Source: Convolutriloba macropyga (taxonomy: Eukaryota). From it: a stretch of DNA of 64,000 nucleotides. Below, in pieces: positions 6,801 to 64,000 of this stretch. A program made the translations under genes and the position numbers. Numbering within the stretch: the stretch's first letter is position 1; each line of letters starts with the position of its first letter. Under the pieces are notes generated by a model. That model was given only the letters and a program-made list of their open reading frames with translations. It searched no databases and was not told where the DNA came from. The stretch is taken from assembly GCF_964194025.1 (NCBI RefSeq), contig NC_134482.1:2046001-2110000 (forward strand). The letters are read 5' to 3'.

Positions 6801-7060
6801 GCAAATATCATTGATTCAAATGTTAAATTCTTTCAACCAGTCGGAAATAAAAAATCGAATCTTAAACTTGATGTGTAAGTACTTCAATATTTATTTCAGC
6901 ATCGAAAATTCGTGTTCCATGACATTTATCTGTCTCTGCGAAAAATGTCGGTCCTCAAACAAAATAAACTTAACAAATTTAAACTAGTATGACTCATCTA
7001 TTTATATAAATTTTGCGGGAGCAGTCCCTCACGTTTGTGGAAGCCATAATAATAATAATA
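3856..7060 (+). mobile_element. CR1/L2-group LINE, 5'-truncated in ORF1, disrupted ORF2 (copy 1)
   Basis: ORF1 tail 3859-4113; APE endonuclease motifs (IALTETWL, YNPP, VGDFN, SDH); RT motifs (NYRP, QYGFR, PQGSILGP, LFADD); C-terminal CxCxxC; 3' GGGA-GCAG-TCCC hairpin and (AAT)n tail; frameshifts and stops. Confidence 0.93.
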
Positions 7061-7357
7061 CTTAACACTTATATCCTTACAAATTCAATATTAATTCTAG
7101 GTGCTCTTACTTTATCTTTTGCACATGTTCAAGCTGTAAAGATTTAGTGAGTTTATGCTAACTTTTACCATTATTGGTACTCCGGTATTGGAGAATTAAG
7201 TCTTTTCTCTTTCTCTCTCTACAGAAGGGTTCTAATTGATTCTATTCCTCAAATTTTTTTCAAAACCTTATTCAGAAAAGAATAAATGCAAACAAAGAAA
7301 AATTGATGTGCAGAAAGCAACATTTTGTCCGATTATCTTTGCTTGCACCACTGCAGC

Positions 7358-12662: not shown

Positions 12663-12959
12663 CTTAACACTTATATCCTTACAAATTCAATATTAATTCT
12701 AGGTGCTCTTACTTTATCTTTTGCACATGTTCAAGCTGTAAAGATTTAGTGAGTTTATGCTAACTTTTACCATTATTGGTACTCCGGTATTGGAGAATTA
12801 AGTCTTTTCTCTTTCTCTCTCTACAGAAGGGTTCTAATTGATTCTATTCCTCAAATTTTTTTCAAAACCTTATTCAGAAAAGAATAAATGCGAACAAAGA
12901 AAAATTGATGTGCAGAAAGCAACATTTTGTCCGATTATCTTTGCTTGCACCACTGCAGC

Positions 12960-15205
12960 GTGTGTGTGTTAATCGGGGTCCGCTCTCCCGATCCAGGTGT
13001 TCCAAAGATTAAGCGCTATATTTGGGTTTTTCGAGGTATCACTCCAGTCAGGTTGTTTTTGTCTGACGTCGTCTGGGACAGGGCAGTTTAGCATGATGTG
13101 TTCAAACGTTTCTGGCCCTTCTTCACATCCTCTGCACTGCTCTGTCTCGCATTTTCCCGTCTTTTGTCTCCAGTATCGTAGCTCCGGATGACGGCTAAAA
13201 CGCAGCCTACTGATTTTCAATTGTTGCGTTCGGCTCAGGTTGTCATCCATGCCCCTTCTTATAGGTGCCTCTTCCCTCAGATGCCTGTAGATGGTTATCT
13301 TAGCAGTGTCATGGGGGTTTCCGGCAGTCTGTTCCAACTTACTCCCCAGTTCTGCTAGTTTATCAGCTTTTTCGTTTCCGTCTATCCTCACATGACTTGG
13401 GTATAAGATCAGGAGCGGGGTTATCCTTCTACCGTTGTATTCATTGATGAGTGATATTACGTGTTCTTCCAGGTGGCTCTTGGGGAATTTTTTTGTGGAA
13501 GAGTTGTTCCATTCAATTAACCACAGTGAGCGAAACAGTTCTGACTCTGAGCTATTTCAGTGGGTATTTCTCTAAGCAGGTCTTTAGAGCTATGTTCAGG
13601 TCTACTAACTCGGCCTGAAACGCTGTACGCTGTTACTCCAAGTGGCTTTGAGTAAAAGATCTTGACGAGGGTTTGGCGCCTCCGGACATCTGTAGCTTTA
13701 CTCCGCCAGTTTTTCTTAGCGGTCCGCTGTTGTACTTGCTTTTCGGCTATGTCCCTTCTGGGGTTTGTACTTTTTAGCCGAAGCGATTTGTCGAATGCGA
13801 TTGCGCTTGTTGAGTGGCGGTACGTTGAATGGTACTGAGCTCTGCTTCGTTCAGTACTTCCTGGACAAAGGTTGTCTTCAGCTGCCCCGTGTTGGCTCGA
13901 GCTGCAAATCTATGGCTCTTTTCAGGCTCTTCAATGCTTGTTTTTGATATCCACGGTTGCCAGGCCAGTCCAGAGTACTGAATTACTGTTCTCCTTTTTG
14001 CGATGTAGGTGCCGTGCAGCGTGGACTTGTCGTAGCCCCAGTCAGGACCGCGAGGATGGTGAGAACTCTGCTTCGATTGATCACTTTCTTCCTAACAACC
14101 CTGATATGAGTTGAAGTTTATTTGACCGTCACATGTAACGCCCAGGAATTTCGGATTCTCTGTTTGTTTCACTCTCGTTCCCCCAATGCACAAGTTCAGT
14201 TCCTGTTTGCTTTCTTTAGTGTTGGTAAAAAAAGAAGCTGCTTTTACATTTCTCTTTCTTGATGCAGAGTTTTCCTTTGAGGCTACGTTGATTAACATGG
14301 TCAAGTGTTTGCTGCACTTTCTGGCTGGCAACTCCGATGTCTCCGTTTCGGGCATAGACAGCAATATCATCGGCGAAGAGGCTCTTGGGTGCGTCTTCTA
14401 ATCCTTTTTTGATGTCGTCTCTGTAGATCAAGAAAAAGATGGGGCTGATAACTGATCCTCGGGGAACTCCCTGTTTGAAAGTCTTTGTCTTACTTCGGCT
14501 GTTCCCGAACTGGACATAAACGAGGCGGTTGCCGACCAGTTTTTGATCCACCGCAACATCTGCCAACTGAAGCTTTTTTGGTCAATTCCCACAGCAGCGC
14601 ACCTCTCCATACGGTGTTGTATGCTATGCTGTCGTCAATCAACGGAAGAACCGTCCACTTTATGAGTTATTACTGGAAGCCATCACTAATCTGCTGTGAG
14701 AGTCATATCAGCTGGTCGTCTGCCAATCTCCAATCCCGAAAGCTTGCTTGATCTTCGCACTGTAGATTAGTGGTCTCTAGGTGATGCTTCATTCTTTCAC
14801 AGATCATTCGCTCCATGACTTGGCCAATAATCGACGTTAAATTAATGAGCCTACACGACTCTAGATTCCCTAAAGTCATGTTTTCTTTGGGATGGGTCGT
14901 ATATCCGCTGTTCGCCACACTTGGGGGGCTATACTTTCGTTTCACACTGTGTTGAAGAGGCCCAGCAGTGTTGTTTCTGCTACTGGTCCCAGTTCTTTAA
15001 TCATTTTCGGATGCATGTGGTTGGGCCCGGAAGCTTTGTTTGGCTTCAACTCTGACAATGCTGCTTCCATTTCTTTCATTTGACGCTTTTTAATTTGCCG
15101 TTTTTGTCTTCAGAAAATCATTTGTTGTTCATTTGGGCCATCTGTCCTCCTTCCGTAGCGTCAGGATGCTGACTAACTTGTATTAGCTGGTAAAGGCGTT
15201 TGCTT

Positions 15206-22156: not shown

Positions 22157-23790
22157 GGATACTTTAAGGCACTTTGGAAGCATGCAAAAATTCAGACACT
22201 CATTTAATAATGCTTCAAAGAGTGGAGTAATTGCTCAAGATACTTTTTTGAGGATAAAATATTGTATGTGGCGGCAGTCTCAACTAAACTCCGACGGGAG
22301 CAATCGCAGTGCGTCAAAAATGTTCATACTGATTGTTGGAAAAAGAAACATGGTTTTCGTTTTAGTTTTCATTTTTTATATTTCTGCTTTGTATCGAATA
22401 TTTTTTTAATAAATATACTCCATTTTTTGCGGAAAAACTCTTACATATTTTAATGTTGCACCCGACGCTTTATTGAAGAACTCGAATAAAATTTTTTGTC
22501 ATTGACTATGACTTTCATGGTCTCATTTGGTACAACTGCTTTTGTTTTTGCCTAATTACTTTTGGAAAGGTTTGCATTTTAATTGTTTTGAAAAACACTA
22601 TTGTCCGGATTTTCGCGATAAAATCTTTGGAAAATTTTTATTTGCCACAATCTTTTTCAGGCGGCTCTCTCTCTCTCTCTAAGTGGTTTTGTGCTCTGAA
22701 TCTATTTGAATCAAATTTTGGTAAATTCTCATCTAGTGTATCAGTCAAATCTTTTTTAGGTTTTTCGAACGTCTGATAAGAGGACCATTAGTTACCGTCA
22801 TCGATAAATTCTTTTAAATTATTCCATCAAGATATTGTTAAGAAGATCGACAAGATTACAGTTCCTTTGTTCCGACCCGCTTTCATGTAAACACTTAGTG
22901 TCCAATGAATACGTTTTCAAGAGATCTTTTAAACGTTAGCGTTATTCTTTGTCAGTCTGAAAAAATGGAAATAGTGTGATCAGGAGATAAAGAGTTTGAA
23001 AAAGCTTGCAGCCCGTATTAATTTCGTACTCGAGGTTTTGCTTGTTGGTTTTATGTTTTCAACTAGCGAGAAGTATTTTCCAGAGTTGAATAATTCCGGC
23101 AGTTGGCAGTATTAAGCAAAAAAAATTTATTTTGAAGTCTCCACATGGTATATTCCTATCTTCAGGGTCAATTGGTAAGCTATTTAAAAAAGTTTCAAGA
23201 ATTTGAAAATTAACCATTCTNNNNNNNNNNNNNNNNNNNNNNNNNNNNNNNNNNNNNNNNNNNNNNNNNNNNNNNNNNNNNNNNNNNNNNNNNNNNNNNN
23301 NNNNNNNNNNNNNNNNNNNNNNNNNNNNNNNNNNNNNNNNNNNNNNNNNNNNNNNNNNNNNNNNNNNNNNNNNNNNNNNNNNNNNNNNNNNNNNNNNNNN
23401 NNNNNNNNNNNNNNNNNNNNCCATTTGTCTGTCTGGGTTTGTTGAGAATCAAGAAGTGAATCTAGTAACTTACTTAATTTTTTTACTGCAAGTGGGTTCA
23501 TTTCTTTTTGCTGTTGTTTTGCATATGAAGATGCCTCCAGTTTCCGGATAGGCACCACCCTACGTTTTTCCTTTTTCTTGTTTTTTTTCCACTACCCGTT
23601 CTTTTTCTCTTTTTCGTATATGGGTTTTGTGGTGGAAAGAAAAGGAGAATGTTTAATCGCGGAAATTGCAAAAAAACACTGCAATAACTGACTGATTTCT
23701 CTGATTTTTTGGTTTTTTTAGTTGCATTTTAAGGATGAGCAAAGAACGGACGGTGGGGATCGCAAGCAGTGAATAACTCAGCTTTAAAAT
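21860..23790 (-). mobile_element. Decayed L2/CR1-type LINE spanning the assembly gap
   Basis: PKCLKVSKIELLFNGG..PKNYISISLPPVIGKPFEK (RT N-terminal part) and CGDFKIN (EN); linking 23421-23790 as ORF1/5' region is tentative. Confidence 0.6.
23221..23420. other. Assembly gap (200 N)
   Basis: Run of N. Confidence 1.
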
Positions 23791-33189: not shown

Positions 33190-36100
33190 TTTGATGTAAG
33201 AGTGGGGGGGGGGGGTAATTTGTCTATGGGGGTAAATTGATGTAAGAGTGTGGGGGTAATTTGTTCAGAGAGGGTAAAATAATGTAAGAGTTGGGCTGCA
33301 ATGGGAGGACTTTTCAGGAATTACCCCCCTGACTAAAATTGCTATGTAAGAGTGGGCTGCAATGGGCTGCAATGGGAGGACTTTTCAGGATTTACCCCCC
33401 TCACTGAAATTGCCATGTAAGAGTGAGCTGCAATGGGCTGCAATGGGAGGACTTTCCAGGAATTTCCCCCTGACTGAAATTGCCATGTAAGAGTGGGCTG
33501 CAATGGGCTGCAATGGGAGGACTTTTCAGGAATTACCCCATCCATGACTGAAATTGCAATGTAAGAGTGGGCCGCAATGGACTGCAATGGGAGGACTTTT
33601 CAGGAATTACCCCTCTCCACCCTGATTGAAATTCAGAGGGGGTAAAATGATGAAAGAGTTGGGCTGCCAAGGGGGGTAAAATGGTGTAAGAGTGAGGGGG
33701 TTTTTGTCGAGAGAGAGTAAAATAATGTAAGAGTTGGGCTGCCAAGGGGGGTAAAATGTTGTAAGAGTGAGGGGGTAACTTGTTTAGAGGGGGTAAAATA
33801 ATGTAATAGTTGGGCTGCAAAGGGGGATAAGATGTTGTAAGAGTGAGGGGTTAATTTGCACAGAGGGGGTTTAATGATGTAAGAGTTGGGCTGCCAGGAG
33901 GGTAAAATGGTGTAAGAGTGAGGGGGTAATTTGTCCAGAGAGGGTAAAATGATGTAAGAATTGGGCTGCCATGGGGGTAAAATGGTGTAGGAGTGAGGAG
34001 GTAATTTGTCCAGAGAGGGTAAAATGATGTAAGAGTTGGGCTGCCAAGGGGGGGGGGTAAAATTTTGTAAGAGTGAGGCGGTAATTTGTTCAGAGGGGGT
34101 AAAATGATTTAATAGTTGGGCTGCCAAGGGGGATATAATGGTGTAAGAGCGAGCGGGTAATTTGTTCAGAGGGGGTAAAATAATGTAAGAGTTGGGCTGC
34201 CAAGGGGGATAAAATGGTGTAAGAGTGAGGGGGTTTTTGTCGAGAGGGAGTAAAATAATGTAAAAGTTGGGCTGACAAGGGGGGGTAAAATGTTGTAAGG
34301 GTGAGGGGTTAACTTGTTTAGAGGGGGTAAAATGATGTAATAGTTGGGCTGCAAAGGGGGATAAGTTGTTGTAAGAGTGAGGGGTTAATTTGCACAGAGG
34401 GGGTTTAATGATGTAAGAGTTGGGCTGCCAGGGGGTTAAAATGGTGTAAGAGTGAGGGGGTAATTTGTCCAGAGAGGTTAAAATGATGTAAGAGTTGAGC
34501 TGCCAAGGGGGGGGGGGTAAAATTTTGTAAGAGTGAGGCGGTAATTTGTTCAGAGGGGGTAAAATGATTTAATAGTTGGGCTGCCATGGGGGTAAAATGG
34601 TGTAAGAGTGAGGAGGTAATTTGTCCAGAGAGGGTAAAATGATGTAAGAGTTGGGCTGCCAAGGGGGGGGGGGGGGGGTAAAATTTTGTAAGAGTGAGGC
34701 GGTAATTTGTTCAGAGGGGGTAAAATGATTTAATAGTTGGGCTGCCAAGGGGGATATAATGGTGTAAGAGCGAGCGGGTAATTTGTTCAGAGGGGGTAAA
34801 ATAATGTAAGAGTTGGGCTGCCAAGGGGGATAAAATGGTGTAAGAGTGAGGGGGTTTTTGTCGAGAGAGAGTAAAATAATGTAAGAGTTGGGCTGCCAAG
34901 GGGGGTAAAATGTTGTAAGAGTGAGGGGGTAACTTGTTTAGAGGGTGTAAAATAATGTAATAGTTGGGCTGCAAAGGGGGGTAAGATGTTGTAAGAGTGA
35001 GGGGTTAATTTGCACAGAGGGGGTTTAATGATGTAAGAATTGGGCTGCCAGGAGGGTAAAATGGTGTAAGAGTGAGGGGGTAACTTGTCCAGAGAGGGTA
35101 AAATGATGTAAGAATTGGGCTGCCATGGGGGTAAAATGGTGTAAGAGTGAGGAGGTAATTTGTCCAGAGAGGGTAAAATGATGTAAGAGTTGGGCTGCCA
35201 AGGGGGGGGGGGGGTAAAATTTTGTAAGAGTGAGGCGGTAATTTGTTCAGAGGGGGTAAAATGATTTAACAGTTGGGCTGCCAAGGGGGATATAATGGTG
35301 TAAGAGCGAGCGGGTAATTTGTTCAGAGGGGGTAAAATAATGTAAGAGTCGGGCTGCCAAGGGGGGTAAAATGGTGTAAGAGTAAGGGGGTAATTTGTTC
35401 AGAGGGGGTAAAATGATGTAAGGGCTGGGCTGCCAAGGGGGGTAAAATGGTGTAAGAGTGAGGGGGTAACTTGTTTAGAGGGGGTAAAATAATTTAATAG
35501 TTGGGCTGCAAAGGGGGATAAGATGTTGTAAGAGTGAGGGGTTAATTTGCACAGAGGGGGTTTAATGATGTAAGAGTTGGGCTGCCAGGAGGGTAAAATG
35601 GTGTAAGAGTGAGGGGGTAATTTGTCCAGAGAGGGTAAAATGATGTCAGAATTGGGCTGCCATGGGGGTAAAATGGTGTAAGAGTGAGGAGGTAATTTGT
35701 CCAGAGAGGGTAAAATGATGTAAGAGTTGGGCTGCCAAGGGGGGGGGGGGTAAAATTTTGTAAGAGTGAGGCGGTAATTTGTTCAGAGGGGGTAAAATGA
35801 TTTAATAGTTGGGCTGCCAAGGGGGATACAATGGTGTAAGAGCGAGCGGGTAATTTGTTCAGAGGGGGTAAAATAATGTAAGAGTTGGGCTGCCAAGGGG
35901 GATAAAATGGTGTAAGAGTGAGGGGGTTTTTGTCGAGAGGGAGTAAAATAATGTAAGAGTTGGGCTGCCAAGGGGGGTAAAATGTTGTAAGGGTGAGGGG
36001 TTAACTTGTTTAGAGGGGGTAAAATGATGTAATAGTTGGGCTGCAAAGGGGGATAAGTTGTTGTAAGAGTGAGGGGTTAATTTGCACAGAGGGGGTTTAA

Positions 36101-39100
36101 TGATGTAAGAGTTGGGCTGCCAGGGGGTTAAAATGGTGTAAGAGTGAGGGGGTAATTTGTCCAGAGGGGGTAAAATGATGTAAGGGCTGGGCTGCCAAGG
36201 GGGGTAAAATGGTGTAAGAGTGAGGGGGTAACTTGTTTAGAGGGGGTAAAATAATTTAATAGTTGGGCTGCAAAGGGGGATAAGATGTTGTAAGAGTGAG
36301 GGGTTAATTTGCACAGAGGGGGTTTAATGATGTAAGAGTTGGGCTGCCAGGAGGGTAAAATGGTGTAAGAGTGAGGGGGTAATTTGTCCAGAGAGGGTAA
36401 AATGATGTCAGAATTGGGCTGCCATGGGGGTAAAATGGTGTAAGAGTGAGGAGGTAATTTGTCCAGAGAGGGTAAAATGATGTAAGAGTTGGGCTGCCAA
36501 GGGGGGGGGGGTAAAATTTTGTAAGAGTGAGGCGGTAATTTGTTCAGAGGGGGTAAAATGATTTAATAGTTGGGCTGCCAAGGGGGATACAATGGTGTAA
36601 GAGCGAGCGGGTAATTTGTTCAGAGGGGGTAAAATAATGTAAGAGTTGGGCTGCCAAGGGGGATAAAATGGTGTAAGAGTGAGGGGGTTTTTGTCGAGAG
36701 GGAGTAAAATAATGTAAGAGTTGGGCTGCCAAGGGGGGTAAAATGTTGTAAGGGTGAGGGGTTAACTTGTTTAGAGGGGGTAAAATGATGTAATAGTTGG
36801 GCTGCAAAGGGGGATAAGTTGTTGTAAGAGTGAGGGGTTAATTTGCACAGAGGGGGTTTAATGATGTAAGAGTTGGGCTGCCAGGGGGTTAAAATGTTGT
36901 AAGAGTGAGGGGTTAATTTGTCCAGAGAGGGTAAAATGATGTAAGAGTTGAGCTGCCAAGGGGGTAAAATGGTGTAAGAGTGAGGGGGTTATTTGTTCAG
37001 AGGGGGTTTGAATATGTAAGAGTTGGGCTGCCAAGGGGGGTAAAATGGTGTAAGAGTGAGGGGGTATATTTGTCCAGAGAGGGTAAAATGATGTAAGAGT
37101 TGGGCTGCAAAGGGGGGTAAAATTTTGTAAGAGTGAGGCGATAATTTGTTCAGAGGGGGTAAAATTATGTAATAGTTGGGCTGCCAAGGGGGATAAAATG
37201 GTGTGAGAGCGAGCGGGTAATTTGTCCAGAGGGGGGGAAAATGAGCTAAGAGTTGAGCTGCCAAGGGGGATAAAATGGTGTAAGAGTGAGGGGTAATGTG
37301 TTCAGAGGGGGTAAAATGATGTAAGATTTGGGCTGCCAAGAGGGGTAAAATGGTGTAAGAGTGGGGGGGTAATTTGTCGAGAGGTGGTAAAACAATGTAA
37401 TAGTTGGGCTGCCAAGGGTGAAGGAATGGTGTAAGAGCGAGGGGGTAATTTGTCCAGAGGGCGTTACATGAGCTAAGATTTGAGCTGCCAAGGGGGGTAC
37501 AATGGTGTAAGAGTGAGTGGGTAATTTGTTCAGAGGGGGTAAAATGATGTAAGAGTCGGGCTGCCAAGGGGGTTAAATTGGTGTAAGAGTAAGGGGGTAA
37601 TTTGTCCAGAGGGGGTAAAATGATGTAAGGGTTGGGCTGCCAAGGGGGGTAAAATGGTGTAAGAGTGAGGGGGTAATTTGTTCAGAGGGGGTTTAATGAT
37701 GTAAGAGTTGAGCTGACAAGGGGGGTAAAATGGTGTAAGAGTGAGGGGGTAATTTTTCCAGAGAGGCTAAAATGATGTAAGAGTTGGGCTGCCAAGGGGG
37801 TAAAATGTTATAAGAGTGAGGGGGTAATTTGTTCAGAGTGGGTAAAATGATATAATAGTTGGGCTGCCAAGGGGGATAATATGATGTAAGAGTTAGGGGG
37901 TAAATTGTTCAGAGGGGGTAAAATGATGTAAGAGTTGGGCTGCCAAAAGGTGTAAAATGGTGTAAGAGTGAGGGGGTAATTTGTCCAGAGGCGGTAAAAT
38001 GATGTAATAGTTGGGCTGCCAAGGGTGATAAAATGGTGTAAGAGCGAGGGGGTAATTTGTCCAGACGGTGTAACAAGAGCTAAGATTTGAGCTGCCAAGG
38101 GGGGTAAAATGATGTAAGAGTGAGTGGGTAATTTGTTCAGAGGGGGGAAAAATGATGTAAGAGTCGGGCTGCCAAGGGGGGTAAAATGGTGTAAGAGTAA
38201 GGGCGTAATTTCTACAGAGGGGGTAAAATGATGTAAGGGTTGGGCTGCCAAGGGGGTAAAATGGTGTAAGAGTGAGGGGGTAATTTGTTCAGAGGGGGTA
38301 AAATGATGTAAGAGTTGGGCTGCCAGGGGGGTAAAATGGTGTAAGAGTGAGGGGGTATATTTGTCCAGAGAGGGTAAAATGATGTAAGAGTTGGGCTGCC
38401 AAGAGGGATAAAATGGTGTAAGAGTGGGGGGGGGGGTAATTTGTTGAGAGGTGGTAAAATGATGTAATAGTTGGGCTGCCAAGGGTGATAAAATGGTGTA
38501 AGAGCGAGGGGGTAATTTGTCCAGAGGGTGTAACATGAGCTAAGATTTGAGCTGCCAAGGGGGGTACAATGGTGTGAGAGTGAGTGGGTAATTTGTTCAG
38601 AGGGGGTAAAATGATGTAAGAGTCGGGCTGCCAAGGGGGGTAATTTGGTGTAAGAGTAAGGGGGTATTTTGTCCAGAGGGGGTAAAATGATGTAAGGGTT
38701 GGGCTGCCAAGGGGGGTAAAATGGTGTAAGAGTGAGGGGGTAATTTCTTCAGAGGGGGTTTAATGATGTAAGAGTTGGGCTGCCAAGGGGGGTAAAATGG
38801 TGTAAGAGTGAGGGGTAATTTGTTCAGACGGTGTAACAAGAGCTAAGATTTGAGCTGCCAAGGGGGGTAAAATGATGTAAGAGTGAGTGGGTAATTTGTA
38901 ATTTGTTCAGAGGGGGGAAAAATGATGTAAGAGTCGGGCTGCCAAGGGGGGTAAATTGGTGTAAGAGTAAGGGCGTAATTTCTCCAGAGGGGGTAAAATG
39001 ATGTAAGGGTTGGGCTGCCAAGGGGGTAAAATGGTGTAAGAGTGAGGGGGTAATTTGTTCAGAGGGGGTAAAATGATGTAAGAGTTGGGCTGCCAGGGGG

Positions 39101-42100
39101 TAAAATGGTGTAAGAGTGAGGGGGTATATTTGTCCAGAGAGGGTAAAATGATGTAGGAGTTGGGCTGCCAAGGGGGGTAAAATTTTGTAAGAGTGAGGGG
39201 TAATGTGTTCAGAGGGGGTAAAATGATGTAAGAGTTGGGCTGCCAAGAGGGGTAAAATGGTGTAAGAGTGGGGGGGGGGGTAATTTGTTGAGAGGTGGTA
39301 AAATGATGTAATGGTTGGGCTGCCAAGGGTGATAAAATGGTGTAAGAGCAAGGGGGTAATTTGTCCAGAGGGTGTAACATGAGCTAAGATTTGAGCTGCC
39401 AAGGGGGGTACATTGGTGTGAGAGTGAGTGGGTAATTTGTTCAGAGGGGGTAAAAAGATGTAAGAGTCGGGCTGCCAAGGGGGGTAAAATGGTGTAAGAG
39501 TGAGGCGTAATTTTTCCAGAGAGGGTAAAATGATGTAAGAGTTGGGCTGCCAAGGGGGTAAAATGTTATAAGAGTGAGGGGGTAATTTGTTCAGAGTGGG
39601 TAAAATGATATAATAGTTGGGCTGCCAAGGGGGATAATATGATTTAAGAGTTAGGGGGTAAATTGTTCAGAGGGGGTAAAATGATGTAAGAGTTGGGCTG
39701 CCAAGAGGTGTAAAATGGTGTAAGAGTGAGGGGGTAATTTGTCCAGACGCGGTAAAATGATGTAATAGTTGGGCTGCCAAGGGTGATAAAATGGTGTAAG
39801 AGTGAGGGGTAATGTGTTCAGAGGGGGTAAAATGATGTGAAAGTTGGGCTGCCAAGAAGGGTAAAATGGTGTAAGAGTGGGGGGGGTAATTTGTTGAGAG
39901 CTGGTAAAATGATGTAATAGTTGGGCTGCCAAGGGTGATAAAATGGTGTAAGAGCGAGGGGTAATGTATTCAGAGGGGGTAAAATGATGTAAGAGTTGGG
40001 CTGCCAAGAGGGGTAAAATGGTGTAAGAGTGGGGGGGGTAATTTGTTGAGAGGTGGTAAAATGATGTAATAGTTGGGCTTCCAAGGGTGATAAAATGGTG
40101 TAAGAGCGAGGGGGTAATTTGTCCACAGGGTGTAACATGAGCTAAGATTTGAGCTGCCAAGGGGGGTACAATGGTGTGAGAGTGAGTGGGTAATTTGTTC
40201 AGAGAGGGTGAAATGATGTAAGAGTCGGGCTTCCAAGGGGGGTAAATTGGTGTAAGAGTAAGGGGGTAATTTGTCCAGAGGGGGTAAAATAATGTAAGGG
40301 TTGGGCTGCCAAGGGGGGTAAAATGGTGTAAGAGTGAGGGGGTAATTTTTCAGAGGGGGTTTAATGATGTAAGAGTTGGGCTGCCAAGGGGTGTTAAATG
40401 GTGTAAGAGTGAGGGGGTAATTTTTCCAGAGAGGGTAAAATGATGTAAGAGTTGGGCTGCCAAAGGGGGGTAAAATGTTATAAGAGTGAGGGGGTAATTT
40501 GTTCAGAGTGGGTAAAATGATATAATAGTTGGGCTGCCAAGGGGGATAATATGATGTAAGAGTTAGGGGGTAAATTTTTCAGAGGGGGTAAAATGATGTA
40601 AGAGTTGGGCTGCCAAGAGGTGTAAAATGGTGTAAGAGTGAGGGGTAATTTGTCCAGAGGCGGTAAAATGATGTAATAGTTGGGCTGCCAAGGGTGATAA
40701 AATGGTGTAAGAGCGAGGGGGTAATTTGTCCAGACGTTGTAACAAGAGCTAAGATTTGAGCTGCCAAGGGGGTAAAATGATGTAAGAGTGAGTGGGTAAT
40801 TTGTTCAGAGGGGGGAAAATGATGTAAGTGTCGGGCTGCCAAGGGGGGGGGGGGAAATGGTGTAAGAGTAAGGGCGTAATTTCTCCAGAGGGGGTAAAAT
40901 GATGTAAGGGTTGGGCTGCCAAGGGGGGTAAAATGGTGTCAGAGTGATGGGGTAATTTGTTCAGAGGGGGTTTAATGATGTAAGAGTTGGGCTGCCAAGG
41001 GGGGTAAAATGGTTTATGAGTGAGGGGGTAATCTGATCAGAGGGGGTTTAATGATGTAAGAGTTGGGCTGCCAAGGGGGGTAAAATGGTGTAAGAGTGAG
41101 GGGATAATTTTTTCAGAGAGGGTAAAATGATGTAAGAGTTGGGCTGCCAAGGTGGGTAAAAAGTTATAAGAGTGAGGGGGTAATTTGTTCAGAGGGGGTA
41201 AAATAATATAATAGTTGGGCTGCCAAGGGGATAAAATGATGTAAGAGTGAGGGGGTAATTTGTTCAGAGGGGGTAAAATGATGTAAGAGTTGGGCTGCCA
41301 AGAGGGGTAAAATAGTGCAAGAGTGAGGGGGTAATTTGTCCAGAGGTGGTAAAATGATGTAATAGTTGGGCTGCCAAGGGTGATTAAATGGTATAAGAGC
41401 GAGGGGGTAATTTGTCCAGAGGGTGTAACATGAGCTAAGATTTGAGCTGCCAAGGGGGGTAAAATGGTGTAAGAGTGAGTGGGTAATTTGTTCAGAGGGG
41501 GTAAAATGATGTAAGAGTCGGGCTGCCAAGGGGGGTAAAATGGTGTAAGAGTGAGGGGGTAATTTTTCAGAGGGGGTTTAATGATGTAAGAGTTGGGCTG
41601 CCAAGGGGTGTTAAATGGTGTAAGAGTGAGGGGGTAATTTTTCCAGAGAGGGTAAAATGATGTAAGAGTTGGGCTGCCAAAGGGGGGTAAAATGTTATAA
41701 GAGTGAGGGGGTAATTTGTTCAGAGTGGGTAAAATGATATAATAGTTGGGCTGCCAAGGGGGATAATATGATGTAAGAGTTAGGGGGTAAATTTTTCAGA
41801 GGGGGTAAAATGATGTAAGAGTTGGGCTGCCAAGAGGTGTAAAATGGTGTAAGAGTGAGGGGTAATTTGTCCAGAGGCGGTAAAATGATGTAATAGTTGG
41901 GCTGCCAAGGGTGATAAAATGGTGTAAGAGCGAGGGGGTAATTTGTCCAGACGTTGTAACAAGAGCTAAGATTTGAGCTGCCAAGGGGGTAAAATGATGT
42001 AAGAGTGAGTGGGTAATTTGTTCAGAGGGGGGAAAATGATGTAAGTGTCGGGCTGCCAAGGGGGGGGGGGGGGAAATGGTGTAAGAGTAAGGGCGTAATT

Positions 42101-43520
42101 TCTCCAGAGGGGGTAAAATGATGTAAGGGTTGGGCTGCCAAGGGGGGTAAAATGGTGTCAGAGTGATGGGGTAATTTGTTCAGAGGGGGTTTAATGATGT
42201 AAGAGTTGGGCTGCCAAGGGGGGTAAAATGGTTTATGAGTGAGGGGGTAATCTGATCAGAGGGGGTTTAATGATGTAAGAGTTGGGCTGCCAAGGGGGGT
42301 AAAATGGTGTAAGAGTGAGGGGATAATTTTTTCAGAGAGGGTAAAATGATGTAAGAGTTGGGCTGCCAAGGTGGGTAAAAAGTTATAAGAGTGAGGGGGT
42401 AATTTGTTCAGAGGGGGTAAAATAATATAATAGTTGGGCTGCCAAGGGGATAAAATGATGTAAGAGTGAGGGGGTAATTTGTTCAGAGGGGGTAAAATGA
42501 TGTAAGAGTTGGGCTGCCAAGAGGGGTAAAATAGTGCAAGAGTGAGGGGGTAATTTGTCCAGAGGTGGTAAAATGATGTAATAGTTGGGCTGCCAAGGGT
42601 GATTAAATGGTATAAGAGCGAGGGGGTAATTTGTCCAGAGGGTGTAACATGAGCTAAGATTTGAGCTGCCAAGGGGGGTAAAATGGTGTAAGAGTGAGTG
42701 GGTAATTTGTTCAGAGGGGGTAAAATGATGTAAGAGTCGGGCTGCCAAGGGGGGTAAAATGGTGTAAGAGTAAGGGGTAATTTCTCGAGAGGGGGTAAAA
42801 TGATGTAAGTGTTGGGCTGCCCAGGGGGGTAAAATGGTGTAAGAGTGAGGGGGTAATTTGTTCAGAGGGTGTTTAATAATGTAAGAGTTGGGCTGCCAAG
42901 GGGAGTAAAATGGTGTAAGAGTGAGGGGGTAATTTGTCCAGAGGTGGTAAAATGATGTGATAGTTGGGCTGCCAAGGGTGATAAAATGGTATAAGAGCGA
43001 GGGGATAATTTGTCCAGAGGGTGTAACATGAGCTAAGATTTGAGCTGCCAAGGGGGGTAAAATGGTGTAAGAGTGAGTGGGTAATTTGTTCAGAGGGGGT
43101 TTAATGATGTAAGGGTTGGGCTGCCAAGGGGGGTAAAATGGTGTAAGAGTGAGGGGGTAAATTGTTCAGAGGGGGTAAAATGATGTAAGAGTCGGGCTGC
43201 CAAGGGGGGTAAAATGGTGTAAGAGTAAGGGGGTAATTTGTCCAGAGGGGGTAAAATGATGTAAGGGCTGGGCTGCCAAGGGGGGTAAAGTGGTGTAAGA
43301 GTGAGGGGGTAATTTCTTCAGAGGGGGTTTAATGATGTAAGCGTTGGGCTGCCAAGGGGGGTAAATTGGTGTAAGAGTGAGGGGGTAATTTTTCCAGAGA
43401 GGGTAAAATGATGTAAGCGTTGGGCTGCCAAGGGGGGTAAAATGGTGTAAGATTGGGGGGTTGTTTGTTCCGAGGGGGTAAAACGATGTAAGAGTGGGGG
43501 GGGGGTAATTTGTTGAGATG
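33190..43520 (+). repeat. G-rich satellite array, 76-bp monomer with higher-order repeats
   Basis: Consensus agagggggtaaaatgatgtaagagttgggctgccaaggggggtaaaatggtgtaagagtgagggggtaatttgttc; HOR offsets 761, ~1154 and 1217-1219 bp from repeated ORF translations; ~70-bp variant units at 33290-33630. Confidence 0.98.
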
Positions 43521-43650: not shown

Positions 43651-43789
43651 ATGGGTGCTAAAACAATGTAAGATGAGGGGGTAAAATGATGTAAGAGTTG
43701 GTCTGCCAAGGGGGGTAAAATGATGCAAGAGTTGGGCTGCCAGGGGGGGGGGGGGTAAAATGATGTAAGAGTTGGGCTGCCAAGGGGGT

Positions 43790-44134
43790 AAAATGATGTA
43801 AGAGTGGGGCTGCAATGGGGGGATTTTTTGGGAAAAAAGCAGCTCAAAACTCCCATCTTTTTGGGCTGCATTGGGCTTCCAAGGGGGGGGGGGGTAAAAT
43901 GGTGTAAGAGTGAGGGGGTAAAAGACAAATTAACCCCCCACTCTTACCGCTTTTTTGATCTGCCAAGGGAGGTAAAATGGTGTAAGAGTGAGGGGGTAAA
44001 AGACAAAATACCCCCTCACTCTTACACCATTTTACCCCCCTTGGAATCCCAATGCAGCCCAAAAAGACGTAAGAGTTTTGAGCTGCATTTTCCTAAAAAA
44101 TCCTCCTATTGCAGCCCCACTCTTACATCATTTT
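43790..44134. repeat. Foldback structure, ~125-bp inverted arms made of satellite-related sequence
   Basis: 43790-43920 is the imperfect reverse complement of 44009-44134. Confidence 0.9.
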
Positions 44135-44684: not shown

Positions 44685-45477
44685 CAACATTTTGCCTAAC
44701 GCAGATGAGAGTGTACTATACGCGGCAAAACATATTTAACAGGTCATGACATGGAGAATGGAGAAAAATTAAAAATTTGGATTGAGCTTGGTATTTGTCA
44801 GTTGTATGGTAGCATCAGAAATCTTGAAGTATATGGCGTAATGTTGATGCCTATCGTGTAATGTTCAGCGAAACAGAAGTAGGTAGAGAAAACAACAACT
44901 AGGTGTAAGAGTGAGGGGGTAATTTGTTCAGAGGGGGTAAAATGATGTAAGGGCTGGGCTGCCAAGGGGGGTAAAATGGTGTAAGAGTGAGGGGGTGATT
45001 TTTCCAGAGAGGGTAAAATGATGTAAGCGTTGGGCTGCCAAGGGGGGTAAATGGTGTAAGAGTGGGGGTTTGTTTGTTCCGAGGGGGTAAAACGATGTAA
45101 GAGTGAGGGGGTAATTTGTTGAGATGGGGCAATTCTAACAAGTATTATTCATATATATAGACCGTCAAGAGGGGCTATGATGGGAAATACACCAACATTT
45201 TGCCTAACGCAGATGAGAGTGTACTATACGCGGCAAAACATATTTAACAGGTCATGACATGGAGAATGGAGAAAAATTACAGTAAGAGGCTACAAAACAA
45301 AAACGCAAGTTCATAAAGGCTCTGGTAGCACCGTGAAAGCATCGTACATTTGGATTTAGCTTGGTATTTGTCAGTTGTATGGTAGCATCAGAAATCTTGA
45401 AGTATATGGCGTAATGTTGATGCCTATAGTGTAATGTTCAGCGAAACAGAAGTAGGTTGAGAAAACAACAACTAGGT
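44663..45477. repeat. Local duplication with a captured satellite-end fragment
   Basis: 44663-44904 repeated at 45171-45477; the intervening 44902-45171 copies the array end plus unique flank (gggcaattctaacaag...gaccgtcaagag, 43521-43565). Confidence 0.9.
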
Positions 45478-55474: not shown

Positions 55475-55480
55475 TTTATT
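55475..55480 (-). terminator. Putative polyadenylation signal AATAAA
   Basis: ~265 nt downstream of the stop codon of the 55744-56142 ORF; weak evidence in AT-rich DNA. Confidence 0.4.
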
Positions 55481-55743
55481 TAAATAACAATTGCTCATCA
55501 GTATAGTTGGTAATAGTTGAGAATACGTCTTGCATTTCACCAGCCATAATTAAGGCAAAAAAGAATGATTATTGCCAATAAAAACACCAAATTAAACATA
55601 CTTTTGTTCTTCTTGAAAGCGCTGTTTGGTTTTGTTTGTTTTTGGTCCAATCAGTACTGGAAAACTGATTTTTACGCAAATAAGCTCAAAAATGGCAGCC
55701 AGATTTGCTTACTTGCCTTTCTTTGATTCACGCACAGAAAACT

Positions 55744-56142
55744 TTAGATATTTCTCTTATGAATAAACTGTAAAGAAGATTGATCACTATAATCTCTGTA
55801 ATAGTTGTCTCGATTTAGTCCAACAATTTGATCGACTTTTGTCGGAGTGGAGTGAATGAAGTTTTTTTCCAATGGTGCCAGTAATCTCCCAGTGTGTATA
55901 GACCTTTTGTTCTTTGCAGTTTCCATACATATCTGATAAATGCACTTTGTTGCCGAATTCAGATTTACTTCCCGAGTGAGACATTTATGATGGCCAAACA
56001 GTTTTCTGTTTCCTATTGTATTGCAGTTTCTGTGCATTAGTTGTCGACATTTGTCGTTCCTCGTGTTGTCAATGCAGTAATAAAAGCATGCAATCTGAGC
56101 GATCATCAGAACAGCGCATATTAGAACAGCTTCAAACCCCAT
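55744..56142 (-). CDS. Orphan secreted cysteine-rich peptide precursor (132 aa)
   Basis: ATG at 56142; hydrophobic signal MGFEAVLICAVLMIAQIAC; C-X8-C-X7-C-X13-C-X12-C-X4-C domain; KR site; Cys-free C-terminal segment ending KR-NI; upstream TATA box. Confidence 0.72.
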   Translation of the reverse strand: MGFEAVLICAVLMIAQIACFYYCIDNTRNDKCRQLMHRNCNTIGNRKLFGHHKCLTREVNLNSATKCIYQICMETAKNKRSIHTGRLLAPLEKNFIHSTPTKVDQIVGLNRDNYYRDYSDQSSLQFIHKRNI

Positions 56143-56253
56143 CCCTAAATAACTGCTCTTTTTCACTTTATTTGTTATAGATACAAAATAACGATTGCAA
56201 AACTGTTTTCAAATCTAAGGAACATAGGGAATAAACAATAGCGAATCACTTAA

Positions 56254-56261
56254 TTTATATA
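56254..56261 (-). promoter_or_regulatory. TATA box (TATATAAA)
   Basis: gctgTATATAAAttaag on the minus strand, ~112 nt upstream of the ATG. Confidence 0.55.
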
Positions 56262-56400
56262 CAGCTCATTAATGTCCTCAAAAAAGTGGCCAAGTTTTCC
56301 CTTGAAGCAGCGATGATGTTTCTTTTGTTTACTCAATACGTTTTGTACCAGTTAGAAATAATTTCCAAAAACATTGTGAACAAAAAAATAATAAAGAGTA

Positions 56401-56640
56401 CACCCGGGCCGAGGATTTTCCCGAACAATAACGGGGAAAAGAGTGTAAAGAGTGTAAAAATAATATGTTTACACCGTTAGTGCCCCCCTTATTAAGGGTG
56501 GATTTACCTGTTAAAGTGTAATTTTAGTGGTGTAATTTTAAGATATAACGGTGGAAGAAGAATGGAATAACCTATTTTTACACTCTTTGGATTACACTGT
56601 TAAACTTATTTTTACATTCTTTATTACACCGTTAAATAAC
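56401..56640. mobile_element. MITE-like element with inverted gtgtaa/ttacac subrepeats
   Basis: Starts cacccgggccga; several gtgtaa motifs followed by ttacac motifs; right end not defined. Confidence 0.45.
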
Positions 56641-58949: not shown

Positions 58950-59106
58950 NNNNNNNNNNNNNNNNNNNNNNNNNNNNNNNNNNNNNNNNNNNNNNNNNNN
59001 NNNNNNNNNNNNNNNNNNNNNNNNNNNNNNNNNNNNNNNNNNNNNNNNNNNNNNNNNNNNNNNNNNNNNNNNNNNNNNNNNNNNNNNNNNNNNNNNNNNN
59101 NNNNNN
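58950..59106. other. Assembly gap
   Basis: Run of N. Confidence 1.
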
Positions 59107-62100
59107 ATGTGTACTAATTTATAAGTTACCCTCTATTTTATTATTCATATCATGCATATTACAACTAAGGTTATAATGACTTTTTATTATTCACGTATGA
59201 ATATGTTCCCGCTAGTCTACTAAATTATTTCATATTTTGTTCACCGTATTTTATTATAAGAAATCATAATCTCGATTAACATTCTGAATTCAATTTACCG
59301 TTGTAAACGCTCTTCATTTACAGAGACAAATTCTAGTTTGGATTCGCACTGCGATTCCACTAAGTAAAATTCACAAATTCCATGTAATTACGGATTCGCT
59401 CCGCAATTCCCTTATAATTCTAAGATATCGTATTCGCAACACTATTACAATTCTAATTGCAAAACTCAGCTATAACAGGGCGCAGTCCGCAATAAGGACA
59501 GCGGCAAATCTCCACTCGGAGTTCAACCTTTTTGGGAAAAGGCAACTCTAGAGCCCCCACTTCGATGGGAATACTGGAGGACGCAACTCAAACTCGCAAT
59601 TCTTGCACGCGAAGGAATTGTAGTGGATTTTCTCTTGGCCGACCCCCCAGAGCATGTCATTCTGCCCCCTGAACAGGCATATTAAGTTGCAGTCAAAAAT
59701 CTTACAGCACAATCCGAACGAGATCGACGCACTGAACAAGCAAAGACGGCGTGGAAAAATCATTGTCAACGTATTGCGGCGGTAGGCATTCTATGCGGAG
59801 ATAAACCGTGGCAACTTTGTGATCGAAAAGCATCTTCATTGATGTACTTAAGTTTGGGAACGGAAGGGCGACGAGTATTCAATTCTAAAAACTCGACTGT
59901 TAACCAAGACGAAATCTCTGGGATGTTCTGAATAAAACTTTTAATCGAATCCATAATATAACTTTCGACCGATATCTCTTTCTTACACAAAAACAGCAAA
60001 AAGGGGAACCAATTGAGAAATTCTACGGTCACCTCAAAGAACTCTCCAAGAATTGTGATCTGGGAGATAAGGGGGATACAATTATCAGAGACGTTTTTCA
60101 TCGCAAAACATGCAAAATGAAGACATCCAAAAAGAACTTCTCAAAGAAACGGTGGAACCTGATAAGGCCTTAGCAAAAACAATCAACATTGAAATGTGTA
60201 CCCTCAATCAACTTAAAAATGAACGCAAGCAAAACTGAACTCCATTCAACTGTTAATCAAGTACAGCGGATGCGCATCGCGAATGCTACTCCTTTTTCCA
60301 CTATGAATACCACTGCACGGAAAAAAATCCCACAACTTGTCACTTCTGTGGAATGAGTTGGACCCCAGAACACCGCAATAGATGCCCTGCACGTGGAAAG
60401 AAATGCAATAACTGTGGTATTGAAAACTACTTCGCAAAGGTTTGTCGAAAACCTAAAGATTCCAACTCCTACCCAAAGCCTAAGCCACGGGTTAATAATG
60501 TTGAAAAAGATGATCACACTGAGGATGTTAACCAAAATTTGGCTGATTTTGATCCCGATTTGGAACCAAACTACTCATCGGATGAAGATAATTGTGTAGC
60601 TTCGGTATCTTCGGCAGATTTTACAACTTCTTTAGAAGCAGTCAATCTCCCTTTAGTGTTCGGGAACACAGCAACAAATGTTCTGGTGGATTCGGGTAGC
60701 GTATGTACAATGATAAACGAGTCACTGGCAGATTCAATCATTTCCCAAGACCCAAATTTGGATTGGATACGCGAAGCGAATCCCAAACAATTAAAACCTT
60801 TCTCTAACGAGCCCATTCAAACGCTAGACATCCTCCAAACGTCAATTCAAAGCCACAATTGGTACGCGAATCCAATAGAAATTCAAGTAGTGACAGATGA
60901 TTACCGTTCTCTATTGGGTAGAGATTTATTTCCTGCTCTCGGACTTTCCATTCAACAATCTAATAATCAAAAGACAGTTAATCAGATAGATTAAGAATAC
61001 TGTCCAATCAAAAAACAAATTGCAACCAATTTTCCTGACCTAATCTTCAGAATCGGTAAGTCTGAAGTACATACAGTTCGTTCGAAATTTCATAGAAATT
61101 ATACTCATCACACCAAAAAGGTTGTCGTGTCCCTATAAATTTATTAGACAAAGTATCTGATGAATTGAAAAAACTTTCAGAACAAGGACACATCGAAAAA
61201 TTACAGGAATGCTCTGATAAGAATTTATTTCTCCAATTGTAATCAAGGTTATGATGGACAAATCAGTAAAGCTAGCCCTCGATTCCAATGTTCTGAACAA
61301 AGCAATTCATAAAAATAGGTATCAATTGCTAAACATAGGTAGCCTTATCGATTCTATTTCACAACATATTAACGATTCTAATCATGGTGATAATGTTTAT
61401 TTTTCGACGATTGACTTAAAATATGCATATAGCCAACTCATTTGGGCATATTCATTCCCAACCTTGCTAAAAATATGTCACCCTCTCCGGCCCTTACTAA
61501 AGAAAAGTGAAAAATTTATTTGGACTGATAATCACCAAAAACACTTCGAGTATATTGAAACCGTAATCGCAAATGCTACAGAAAACACTCATTTTAACCC
61601 AACACTGGAAACGCGAATCAAATGCAACGCATCTCGCCAAGGCTGAGGCGCTGCGCTTGAGCAATTGGATTTGAAGGGTGGAAAACGGTGGCTTTTGCTT
61701 CTCGCTTTCTTAATAATAATGAAGAACGTTACAGTATAAATGAACTCGAATTGCTTGGTGTGGTTTGGGCCATCGCATTTTTTAAATATTATCTTTTTGG
61801 AAAAAATTTTACAGTCCTGACAGATCATAGAGCACTCCTTTCAGTTTCAAAGTCTCTTCGTTCAAATAAATTTTACAATAGCCGATTAACACGATAGATT
61901 GATCGTTTGTTACCTTTCGATTTTAATATAGAACACATTCCCGGCACTAGAATGGGTTTAGTTGCTTACATTTCGCGCCAAACGAATCAAAAAGCAAAAA
62001 CGCATCACTCAAAATGTTGAGGAATTCATGGTAGCAACAATTTCCCGCATTCGCGGCGCGATTACATCTTTCTTCCGTCACTCAAATCAAATTCCTTCCC

Positions 62101-64000
62101 ATAAGCGGCACACTGCCAGCAAATACAAATTAAAAGTAAACAAGACGCGCGTCCATTCTTCCAAACTTGCTAAAAGTAGCACGCATAATTCAAATGCCTC
62201 AAATAATTCATTCAATACTAGAGCAAAAGTAAACAATTACAATTCAAAATTCATTTCTGACTTTAATTGCCACGCAAATCACTTGATTATAACTAATACT
62301 GCACTCGCATCGCAAATCCACTCGCCAAATTTCAATTGTAATTTCACCGCGAATCCAGAACAAAAAGTGCATCATATAACAATGCCTACAAACGAGTCAT
62401 CACAAAACAGTCCCACAGCTTCTCCGCAAACTCCCCGAGTGACGTTCCGTACCCCGTCAACCCCTATAGTGACTACAAGTACCAGCAACAACAACACTCA
62501 GGCCTCATCGTCACCCGAAAATTGTGACATTGAACTTTCTCTGGAGGAGATTTTTGAGAACAATCTCAATCACCTGTTCACAAAGTCCTTCCTCGCAGTT
62601 CTCACCAGCGAGGATGCGGTGTTGAAGGAAATTAGAGATTGCGCCATTCAAGACGACGAGGCTCGATGCAAGGAGGTTAGCTCATATTTCCACTCATTCT
62701 GGAAAGATCTCCACGTAAAGTCTGGCTGCTTGTGTGTCGACCAACGCGTCGCCATACCTTATTCAATCAAGGAGGCTGTATTGGAATCAATACAAATGAC
62801 ACACCCCGGTAGTTGGGGAATGATTTCTTTTTCCCAATATGCATGGTGGCCATACATGCACAGGGAAACCATGGCCAAAACCTCTGATTGTGTCCCGTGT
62901 ACAGATATTAGTAAGAATCTCAAACCTATTGTACCAAAATCTAAATGGCAACCACATAAGGCTTGCCAAGAACCTAATGAAGAAATTCAAATTGACTTTC
63001 GGAGTCTGATAATAAACGACCAAGATAAAGATATCTATTTCCTAACATGTATCGACCGTTATTCAAAGTGTCCGACAGTTAAAATTTTTGAAAAGGCTAA
63101 TGGGGCAGATGTAGTAAAATTTCTTCGAGACTATACATATACTAACAGAATTCCACAAACAATACGTGTAGGTCAAGCAACTTGTCTAGTAGGTGAACAA
63201 GTTACAAATTACTGTAATGAAAATAATATTAACATTATCGATGCCCCGGTCGGCGGTCATAGAGCTATTGGATTAGTGGAGCGAATGATTCAAACAATAA
63301 AACACCGTTTATCTTGTATGAAAGCTGAAAATAAAGATGCATTCTCAACGTCCCAAGTAATTAAACTATTAGTCTCAGCTTTACGTTCAACAAAACAGAA
63401 AACTACAAAGATAACACCGTTTGAAGCTCACTTCGGTAGTTCTGCAAATACTCCTTTACGGAATATTAGCACTACTCCATCAAGTTTAAATTTAACTTGT
63501 GAAAAAATCATTAATCACTATTTAGATGCCAATACAGTTCCTGCAGATGATTTCTTGGAGAAAGCCGGATGGTCAGCCCCAAAAGAAGTGATCTGGACAT
63601 CGAAAAAACCATGTGTAGGGCACAGCAGGACGCAGGCCGGCGCTATCGCGATTCAGACAACAAGGAATCGCGGTTCATCATTCATCTGAAACTCAAGGAC
63701 CCCATTCCCCGAACAAAAAAATCACCCAAAATCAAACTGGCTCGAAAACTCCCTAACAAAAAGAGAGCGAAACGCCAACTCGCTGGCTTACATGAAGTTT
63801 TACAACATGGATCTTTTGTGAAAAAATCCTCCCCCTACAACAACAATTATTAATGAACCAGGGCGATCGCCGGTGAAAGTTCGTGATAGTGACATAGCAA
63901 AGTTCGCTACCACAGCCGAAAGATCAACAAATTTGTGGACGTATGCCCAACGGCGTCCTGCACCATACGAACAAACTACGGAAACGAAGATCGGAAAACA
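59107..64000 (+). mobile_element. Gypsy/Ty3 LTR retrotransposon (gag-PR-deleted RT-RNase H-INT), defective, runs off the window
   Basis: Gag double knuckle CHFCG..H..CPARGKKCNNCGIENYFAKVC, protease VLVDSGS, RT IDLKYAYSQL, RNase H AFASRFL..YSINELELLGVVWA..TDH, integrase HPG..WWP..CVPC, QIDF, LVERM; many stops and frameshifts; LTR limits not visible. Confidence 0.95.

Follow-up and report, generated by a model that had tools for sequence, protein, structure and literature searches.

A previously undescribed candidate family of secretion-type six-cysteine proteins in repeat-rich DNA

Introduction

Small lineage-restricted secreted cysteine-rich proteins have been the source of many new antimicrobial peptides, pheromones, and venom components, and they are routinely missed by automatic annotation. 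Four described groups come nearest in layout to the protein analyzed here, namely the CHH/MIH/ion-transport-peptide superfamily, invertebrate cysteine-rich antimicrobial precursors with C-terminal propieces, Euplotes pheromones, and Aplysia attractins. Members of the CHH/MIH/ion-transport-peptide superfamily are secreted helical peptides of ~70 to 80 amino acids with six cysteines (three disulfides) that are made from precursors with a dibasic site; in type I CHH-superfamily precursors, a Cys-free piece stands before the hormone. The antimicrobial precursors, for example bivalve myticins and mytilins, are built from a signal, a Cys-rich core, a basic site, and a C-terminal extension, with eight cysteines and an alpha-beta fold in the core and propieces that are usually acidic. 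Euplotes pheromones are small three-helix bundles of ~40 amino acids that are held by three disulfides, diverge quickly, and carry their pro-segment N-terminal to the mature part. CS-alpha-beta defensins and macins are marked by C-X3-C and C-X-C pairs and a beta-sheet, ShK-type domains hold six cysteines in about 35 to 40 amino acids, and insulin/relaxin-like peptides combine an A-chain that has an adjacent CC pair with a B-chain Cys pair. Attractin, a water-borne protein pheromone, is helical in character. In Aplysia, the attractin precursor consists of a signal peptide and then a ~58-residue peptide with three intrachain disulfides, and the Aplysia precursors run from the signal to a single product with no C-terminal piece (PMC3484142).

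Here we analyze an open reading frame (ORF) on the minus strand of a 64-kb stretch of DNA (referred to as the window). A sequence-only reading of this DNA had described the ORF as an orphan precursor of a secreted, cationic six-Cys peptide with prohormone-like processing sites. Our searches place the ORF in what is, as judged from its sequence, a previously undescribed small family of secretion-type six-Cys proteins, which are of a very common general kind.

Anatomy of the ORF

The ORF occupies window positions 56142..55744 on the minus strand, with its ATG at 56142-56140 and its stop codon at 55746-55744, and encodes 132 amino acids. A 140-amino-acid version of the same frame starts at an upstream GTG and is irrelevant for a eukaryote. 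The features of the coding region and its immediate surroundings are as follows (P0001 is a relative described below).

55744..56142, minus strand: putative single-exon coding sequence, 132 codons plus stop, with collinear in-frame similarity to P0001 over residues 1-126
56086..56142, minus strand: hydrophobic leader, residues 1-19, a putative signal peptide (GRAVY 2.15; best 12-aa Kyte-Doolittle mean 2.83)
55909..56085, minus strand: six-Cys domain, residues 20-78 (59 aa), with cysteines invariant in four proteins
55903..55908, minus strand: K79-R80, candidate convertase cleavage site ending the Cys domain, with the R invariant in aligned family members
55747..55902, minus strand: Cys-free basic tail, residues 81-132 (pI 9.7)
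56261-56254, minus strand: TATATAAA, candidate TATA box 119 nt upstream of the ATG, possibly chance at 33% G+C
55480-55475, minus strand: AATAAA, candidate polyadenylation signal 264 nt past the stop, called from the sequence only, for which chance is likewise plausible at 33% G+C

The domain cysteines stand at residues 23, 32, 40, 54, 67, and 72, which gives the framework C-X8-C-X7-C-X13-C-X12-C-X4-C and spreads them over 50 residues. Counted from the translation, the domain holds 10 K/R against 4 D/E, plus 3 His. The motif S-I-H-T-G-R follows at residues 81-86, and K129-R130 lies close to the C terminus. The sequence-only reading had listed all of these elements (the leader, the 59-aa domain with its spacing and charge count, the KR, the SIHT-G-R segment, the final KR, and the TATA box), and each is present in the sequence; the TATA box and the AATAAA account for the limits 55475-56261 that it gave. 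It had also called this the only intact nontransposon ORF. This description holds, given that the remaining ATG-ORFs of at least 120 aa in the window lie within retroelements or a 76-bp satellite or span an N run. The ORF is absent from the gene calls made on its own contig by the gene caller of the protein collection, and an exact-protein look-up returned no record of it.

Relatives and their genomic source

A word-index protein search with the single window ORF as the query gave no match. An exhaustive phmmer scan of 1.84 billion representatives retrieved two relatives. P0001 has 131 aa and was found at E 2.5e-14, with 37% identity across residues 2-126; P0003 has 118 aa and was found at E 1.8e-8. 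A look-up of clusters then yielded P0125, which is nearly a copy of P0003 and differs from it at five amino acids. Pairwise BLASTP between the window ORF and P0001 gave an E of 9e-25. The three relatives all lie on contigs of ENA assembly ERZ25071359, where each forms an ORF of similar length without interruption; P0001 is carried by locus L001, P0003 by L002, and P0125 by L004. Two further phmmer hits, P0002 and P0004, were rejected as long tandem-repeat proteins whose score was summed over repeats (a single unit gave an E of 0.37). The "140-aa" ORFs at window 7367-7789 and 12969-13391 are retrotransposon tails and were for that reason not accepted as relatives. A family-profile search of a 5.8-billion-cluster collection returned P0001 and P0003 only, family alignment scans of JGI metagenomes, IMG/VR, and GTDB genomes found no relatives, and no further family copies beyond the four loci were seen within the window or 175 kb of the same genome.

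Since the similarity to P0001 is collinear and in one frame over residues 1-126, the coding region is, on this alignment, one exon with no intron. The stops of the window ORF and P0001 lie within a few residues of one another, and a GT that resembles a splice donor inside the window ORF is not common to L002.

We then asked where the relatives come from. Window positions 59763-64000 match positions 1-4235 of contig ctg36635 (L003) of ERZ25071359 over 4.2 kb at 99.93% identity, with 0 mismatches and three indels, and the integrase ORF of the window (P0005) is 100% identical on that contig. L003 is the start of this 217-kb contig and begins a few hundred bases past the 157-N run at 58950-59106. 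Repeats beside the relatives match window repeats at 78-89%, and two randomly sampled long ERZ25071359 contigs consist of the same type of retroelement-rich DNA. The window thus seems to represent a second assembly of the specimen or species behind ERZ25071359. The idea that P0001 and P0003 are proteins of a related species was dropped because the integrase ORF and 4.2 kb of window DNA are in the same assembly. Since ERZ25071359 holds a contig that is 99.93% identical to window 59763-64000, the P0001, P0003, and P0125 loci are most likely paralogs belonging to the genome of the window, or at a minimum to its specimen, rather than orthologs from another species.

The relation between the two most similar loci may be of either of two kinds. 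L002 4699-15287 and L004 4802-15229 are collinear over ~12 kb at ~95% identity, with contig coverages of 31x and 50x, and would represent either diverged haplotypes, which would imply high heterozygosity, or a recent segmental duplication. The sequence-only reading had proposed a search for paralogs with conserved cysteines; the searches here found P0001, P0003, and P0125, all with the six cysteines invariant. The ORF remains an orphan in that it matches no known family but not in the sense of a singleton, given that the family has at least three diverged loci plus one near-copy, most likely in the same genome.

Comparison with known families

When all members were searched against Pfam at E values of up to 10, no meaningful family match was obtained, and PDB searches by sequence and by profile, also at E up to 10, gave no match. 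The sequence-only reading had suggested a check with AlphaFold and Foldseek. AlphaFold2 modeled the full precursor at a pLDDT of 37.7, which is unusable, and the domain alone as three helices at a pLDDT of 59.4. A Foldseek search with this domain model found no match better than E 6 in PDB or E 4 in BFVD, a miss that is uninformative with a model of such confidence. As far as these comparisons of sequence and model reach, the family matches no known family. This result agrees with the earlier statement that the Cys spacing falls outside the defensin, macin, ShK, and insulin frameworks.

The individual frameworks can be separated from the window domain as follows. The domain contains neither the C-X3-C nor the C-X-C pair of the CS-alpha-beta defensins (arthropod or mollusc type) and macins, its prediction is all-helical, and Pfam gave no match to these families. 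It has no adjacent Cys pair of the insulin/relaxin-like kind and no Pfam or PDB match to that group. Its six cysteines extend across 50 residues rather than the shorter span of ShK-type domains, and no ShK match was found in Pfam, PDB, or Foldseek. For the CHH/MIH/ITP superfamily, neither Pfam, searched at E up to 10, nor PDB, searched by sequence and by profile, gave a match; the order of parts also differs, with the Cys domain coming first in the window protein.

The window domain resembles attractin in size, Cys count, and predicted helicity. In contrast to attractin, however, the window protein has a 52-aa tail after the basic site, and membership by sequence finds no Pfam match and no PDB sequence or profile match; Foldseek also gave none, with a domain model whose pLDDT is only 59. 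The three predicted helices and six cysteines likewise recall the Euplotes pheromones, although these show no sequence or fold match to the window domain; the retroelement content here also speaks, weakly, for an animal host over a ciliate. Invertebrate antimicrobial precursors with C-terminal propieces have the same layout as the window protein, and the cores of the window copy and P0001 are cationic (pI 9.4 and 9.0). The present family differs from them: it has six cysteines, is predicted to be all-helical, ends in a basic tail, includes one paralog whose core is acidic (pI 5.4), and has no Pfam match.

Conservation of the precursor and its proposed processing

The six domain cysteines are invariant in the four proteins, although only 28 of 113 ungapped alignment columns are. 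The paralogs have the spacing 8-10-13-12-4, compared with 8-7-13-12-4 in the window copy, and the two differ by one 3-residue indel. Neither Cys9 nor Cys19 of the window copy is conserved in the relatives, so the mature protein would have six cysteines. The sequence-only reading had left open whether there were six or seven, and the comparison settles this question for six.

Taken together, these results make it probable that the window ORF is a gene without introns and belongs to a small family of secreted, cysteine-rich proteins that is diverging fast, with a proposed removal of the leader, a disulfide domain, possible cleavage, and an extracellular role. We infer the secretion, cleavage, fold, and role of the product as follows. 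The 19-aa leader would bring the nascent chain into the endoplasmic reticulum and would be cut after Cys19, two or three residues before the first conserved cysteine. The next ~59 residues would then form a compact, probably three-helix domain, in line with the low-confidence fold prediction, with three disulfides among the six invariant cysteines. A protease of the furin/prohormone-convertase type may cleave at the conserved [K/E]-R that closes the domain, which would yield a ~58-aa peptide and a loosely constrained basic tail. The product would act outside the cell; a defense, reproductive-signal, or similar role would fit because of the fast divergence, the charge drift between paralogs, and the repeat-rich location, and the data do not choose among these roles.

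A broader reading, which we put forward tentatively, is that the proteins form a taxonomically restricted family of disulfide-locked helical mini-proteins with an undescribed Cys framework and fold, possibly diversifying as extracellular effectors or signals in defense, mate or gamete recognition, or similar processes. The four copies are intact, their cysteines are invariant, and no further relative was detected in roughly 15 billion proteins. If expressed, the family would extend the known repertoire by one cysteine framework and possibly by one small fold. Candidates of this sort are very numerous; this one offers a small system in which to follow how young families of secreted peptides originate and diversify within repeat-rich DNA.

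The charge and processing features vary among members. Domain pI values are 9.4 (window copy), 9.0 (P0001), and 5.4 (P0003), so the term "cationic" used in the sequence-only reading fits the first two copies but does not describe a family trait. The tail is basic in all members (pI 9.7, 8.6, and 10.0). This weakens the antimicrobial part of the earlier comparison, since a basic rather than acidic tail is unlike the neutralizing propiece found in cationic antimicrobial precursors. At the first basic site, the window copy, P0001, and P0125 have KR and P0003 has ER, with the R invariant, whereas the GR and the terminal KR occur in the window copy only. Conservation among the three proposed sites is limited to this candidate at the domain end. 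A few columns of the tail are conserved (L88, L91, H97, K102, and G108), the rest of it varies freely, and one frameshift has shortened the tail, relative to P0001, in the P0003/P0125 lineage.

These same features bear on whether any prohormone-type processing occurs. It is conceivable, if doubtful in our judgment, that the protein is secreted without such processing and that the whole 113-aa chain left after removal of the leader is the product, with the tail as an integral second part. The similarity to P0001 runs through the tail to residue 126 and includes the five conserved tail columns, P0003 has ER instead of a dibasic pair, the tail is not an acidic counter-ion propiece, and the GR and terminal KR are not conserved, all of which would suit an uncut chain. 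However, the R at the domain end is invariant and is preceded by K in 3/4 copies, the dN/dS ratio of the tail is ~1.2 between P0001 and P0003, and the frameshift in the P0003/P0125 lineage shortens the tail while the rest is kept. We retain possible cleavage at the domain end as part of the preferred reading of a secreted, disulfide-containing product.

Selection on the frame and the cysteines

The four intact ORFs persist at nucleotide distances of 0.23-0.46, with 0.41 between the window ORF and P0001. When neutral drift was simulated to a distance of 0.41 using substitutions only, an open frame survived in 0.09% of runs and the complete set of six Cys codons in 0.03%. Estimates of dN/dS by the Nei-Gojobori method for P0001 versus P0003 were as follows.

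Cys domain: 0.38 (synonymous excess P = 0.03, marginally significant)
Leader: 1.6
Tail: 1.16
Whole ORF: 0.73 (not significantly below 1)

The frame and the cysteines have clearly been maintained by selection over the long term. Constraint is concentrated in the Cys domain, and outside it the selection signal is weak. The sequence-only reading had described a hydrophobic leader and a six-Cys core, and the results support a genuine coding gene with a secretion-type leader and a core whose cysteines are conserved in relatives. Overall, the features that it described hold, and its interpretation holds in part.

The persistence of four intact ORFs at these distances, and the rarity with which simulated drift preserved either the frame or the cysteines, argue against a decaying or never-functional ORF family, i.e., relics of a once-functional gene or a repeat-carried ORF that is now nonfunctional. 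The same is true of the paralog homology, which extends from ~330 nt upstream to the end of the ORF and in which no terminal repeats were seen, and of the finding that 175 kb of the same genome holds no other copy. Such decay would nevertheless be consistent with the repeat-rich location between a 10-kb satellite and an LTR element, the whole-ORF dN/dS of 0.73, an upstream ORF in the presumed leader of the transcript, and the recovery of relatives from ERZ25071359 only in the protein-cluster, JGI, IMG/VR, and GTDB searches. In addition, the L002 and L004 coding sequences are no better conserved than their flanks, differing by 2.0% and 2.5%, respectively, which is about equal. On balance, we regard decay as improbable and favor a maintained gene for a secreted Cys-rich protein.

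The leader

Every member has a hydrophobic leader, and the small residues at -3 and -1 fall at almost the same position of the alignment. In the window copy, residues -3 to -1 are I-A-C, which fits the small-residue rule; in the paralogs, V-L-S or V-F-S stands one position further along. Three properties of the window copy speak for an uncleaved signal anchor, in which case the product would be a small type II membrane protein whose Cys-rich domain is extracellular: its long, very hydrophobic stretch (Kyte-Doolittle 2.83 over residues 5-19), an n-region that carries no positive charge, and a Gln at -3 of the most obvious Ala site. The paralog leaders, however, are shorter and less hydrophobic (2.0 and 1.9), are broken by G, S, and H, and have good V-x-S cleavage motifs, so we consider a signal anchor very unlikely and keep the preferred reading of a leader that would be removed.

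A chance open frame in AT-rich DNA, although one 132-codon frame in 64 kb would not be impossible, is refuted by the phmmer homologs (E 2.5e-14 among 1.84 billion proteins), their invariant cysteines, and the drift simulation, and 300 shuffles of the local 15.8 kb (44.5-60.3 kb) gave an expectation of 0.03 ATG-ORFs of at least 132 codons against the 1 observed.

Flanking signals and start context

A common start context was present at the start codon of 4/4 family loci.

Window 56140-56149, minus strand: start context TTTAGGGATG
L001 4598-4607: start context TTTAGGGATG
L002 9994-10003: start context TTTAGGGATG
L004 10102-10111: start context TTTAGGGATG

In a scan of 350 kb on both strands, this 10-mer was found at no site other than these start codons. 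It may mark a 3' splice or trans-splice acceptor just before the ATG, or else provide a context for translation, with a purine at -3. Upstream of the ORF, L001 and L002 have ~330 nt in common, which is broken in L001 by ~175 nt; downstream of the ORF, they have nothing in common. The start context and this upstream stretch speak for the preferred reading of a gene family.

Other upstream similarities are slight. The 11-mer TATAAATTAAG is also found upstream of P0001 in L001, and TATAAAAAA occurs ~48 nt upstream in L002 and L004; both are weak evidence in such AT-rich DNA. When the sister loci were aligned with the window, their TATA-like element fell opposite a weaker AT-rich stretch ~45 nt before the window ATG. 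In the window copy, an upstream ORF of 16 codons (window 56175-56225, minus strand, with its ATG at 56225) separates the TATA-like element from the main ATG, and the transcription start may for this reason lie elsewhere.

Repeats and other features of the window

The 76-bp satellite is G-rich and forms a 10-kb array at window 33632-43499, with ~129 copies, 84% matches, and a GC skew of ~+0.7. It recurs at 33292-33613, 43677-43822, and 44902-45101, and a satellite-like fragment is located at ~56400-56480, roughly 300 nt upstream of the ORF on the ORF strand. A scan with four generic telomere-unit patterns found no telomere-unit arrays, and Rfam and tRNA scans returned nothing. N runs occupy 23221-23420 (200 bases) and 58950-59106 (157 bases).

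Two tandem non-LTR retrotransposon copies, 5.6 kb apart, lie at window 4460-7789 and 10059-13391; each has endonuclease and reverse-transcriptase ORFs on the plus strand. Beside each copy is a minus-strand 140-aa ORF with a weak zf-RVT match, and the two members of this pair are nearly identical. In L001, a tandem-repeat ORF at 10386-11213 matched Pfam Neprosin marginally, scoring 23.7 bits over only ~30 residues where the cut-off is 22; this match is probably spurious. A DUF5641 domain scored above its Pfam threshold; it suggests BEL/Pao-type elements, is not known from outside animals, and so hints at an animal host, a direction other than that of the Neprosin match.

At the far end of the window, an LTR-type retroelement at 60353-63689 (plus strand) runs past the window end, with its pol spread over at least three ORFs (protease-like, RT/RNase H, and integrase). 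The LTR-type element has many copies of 70-84% identity in ERZ25071359.
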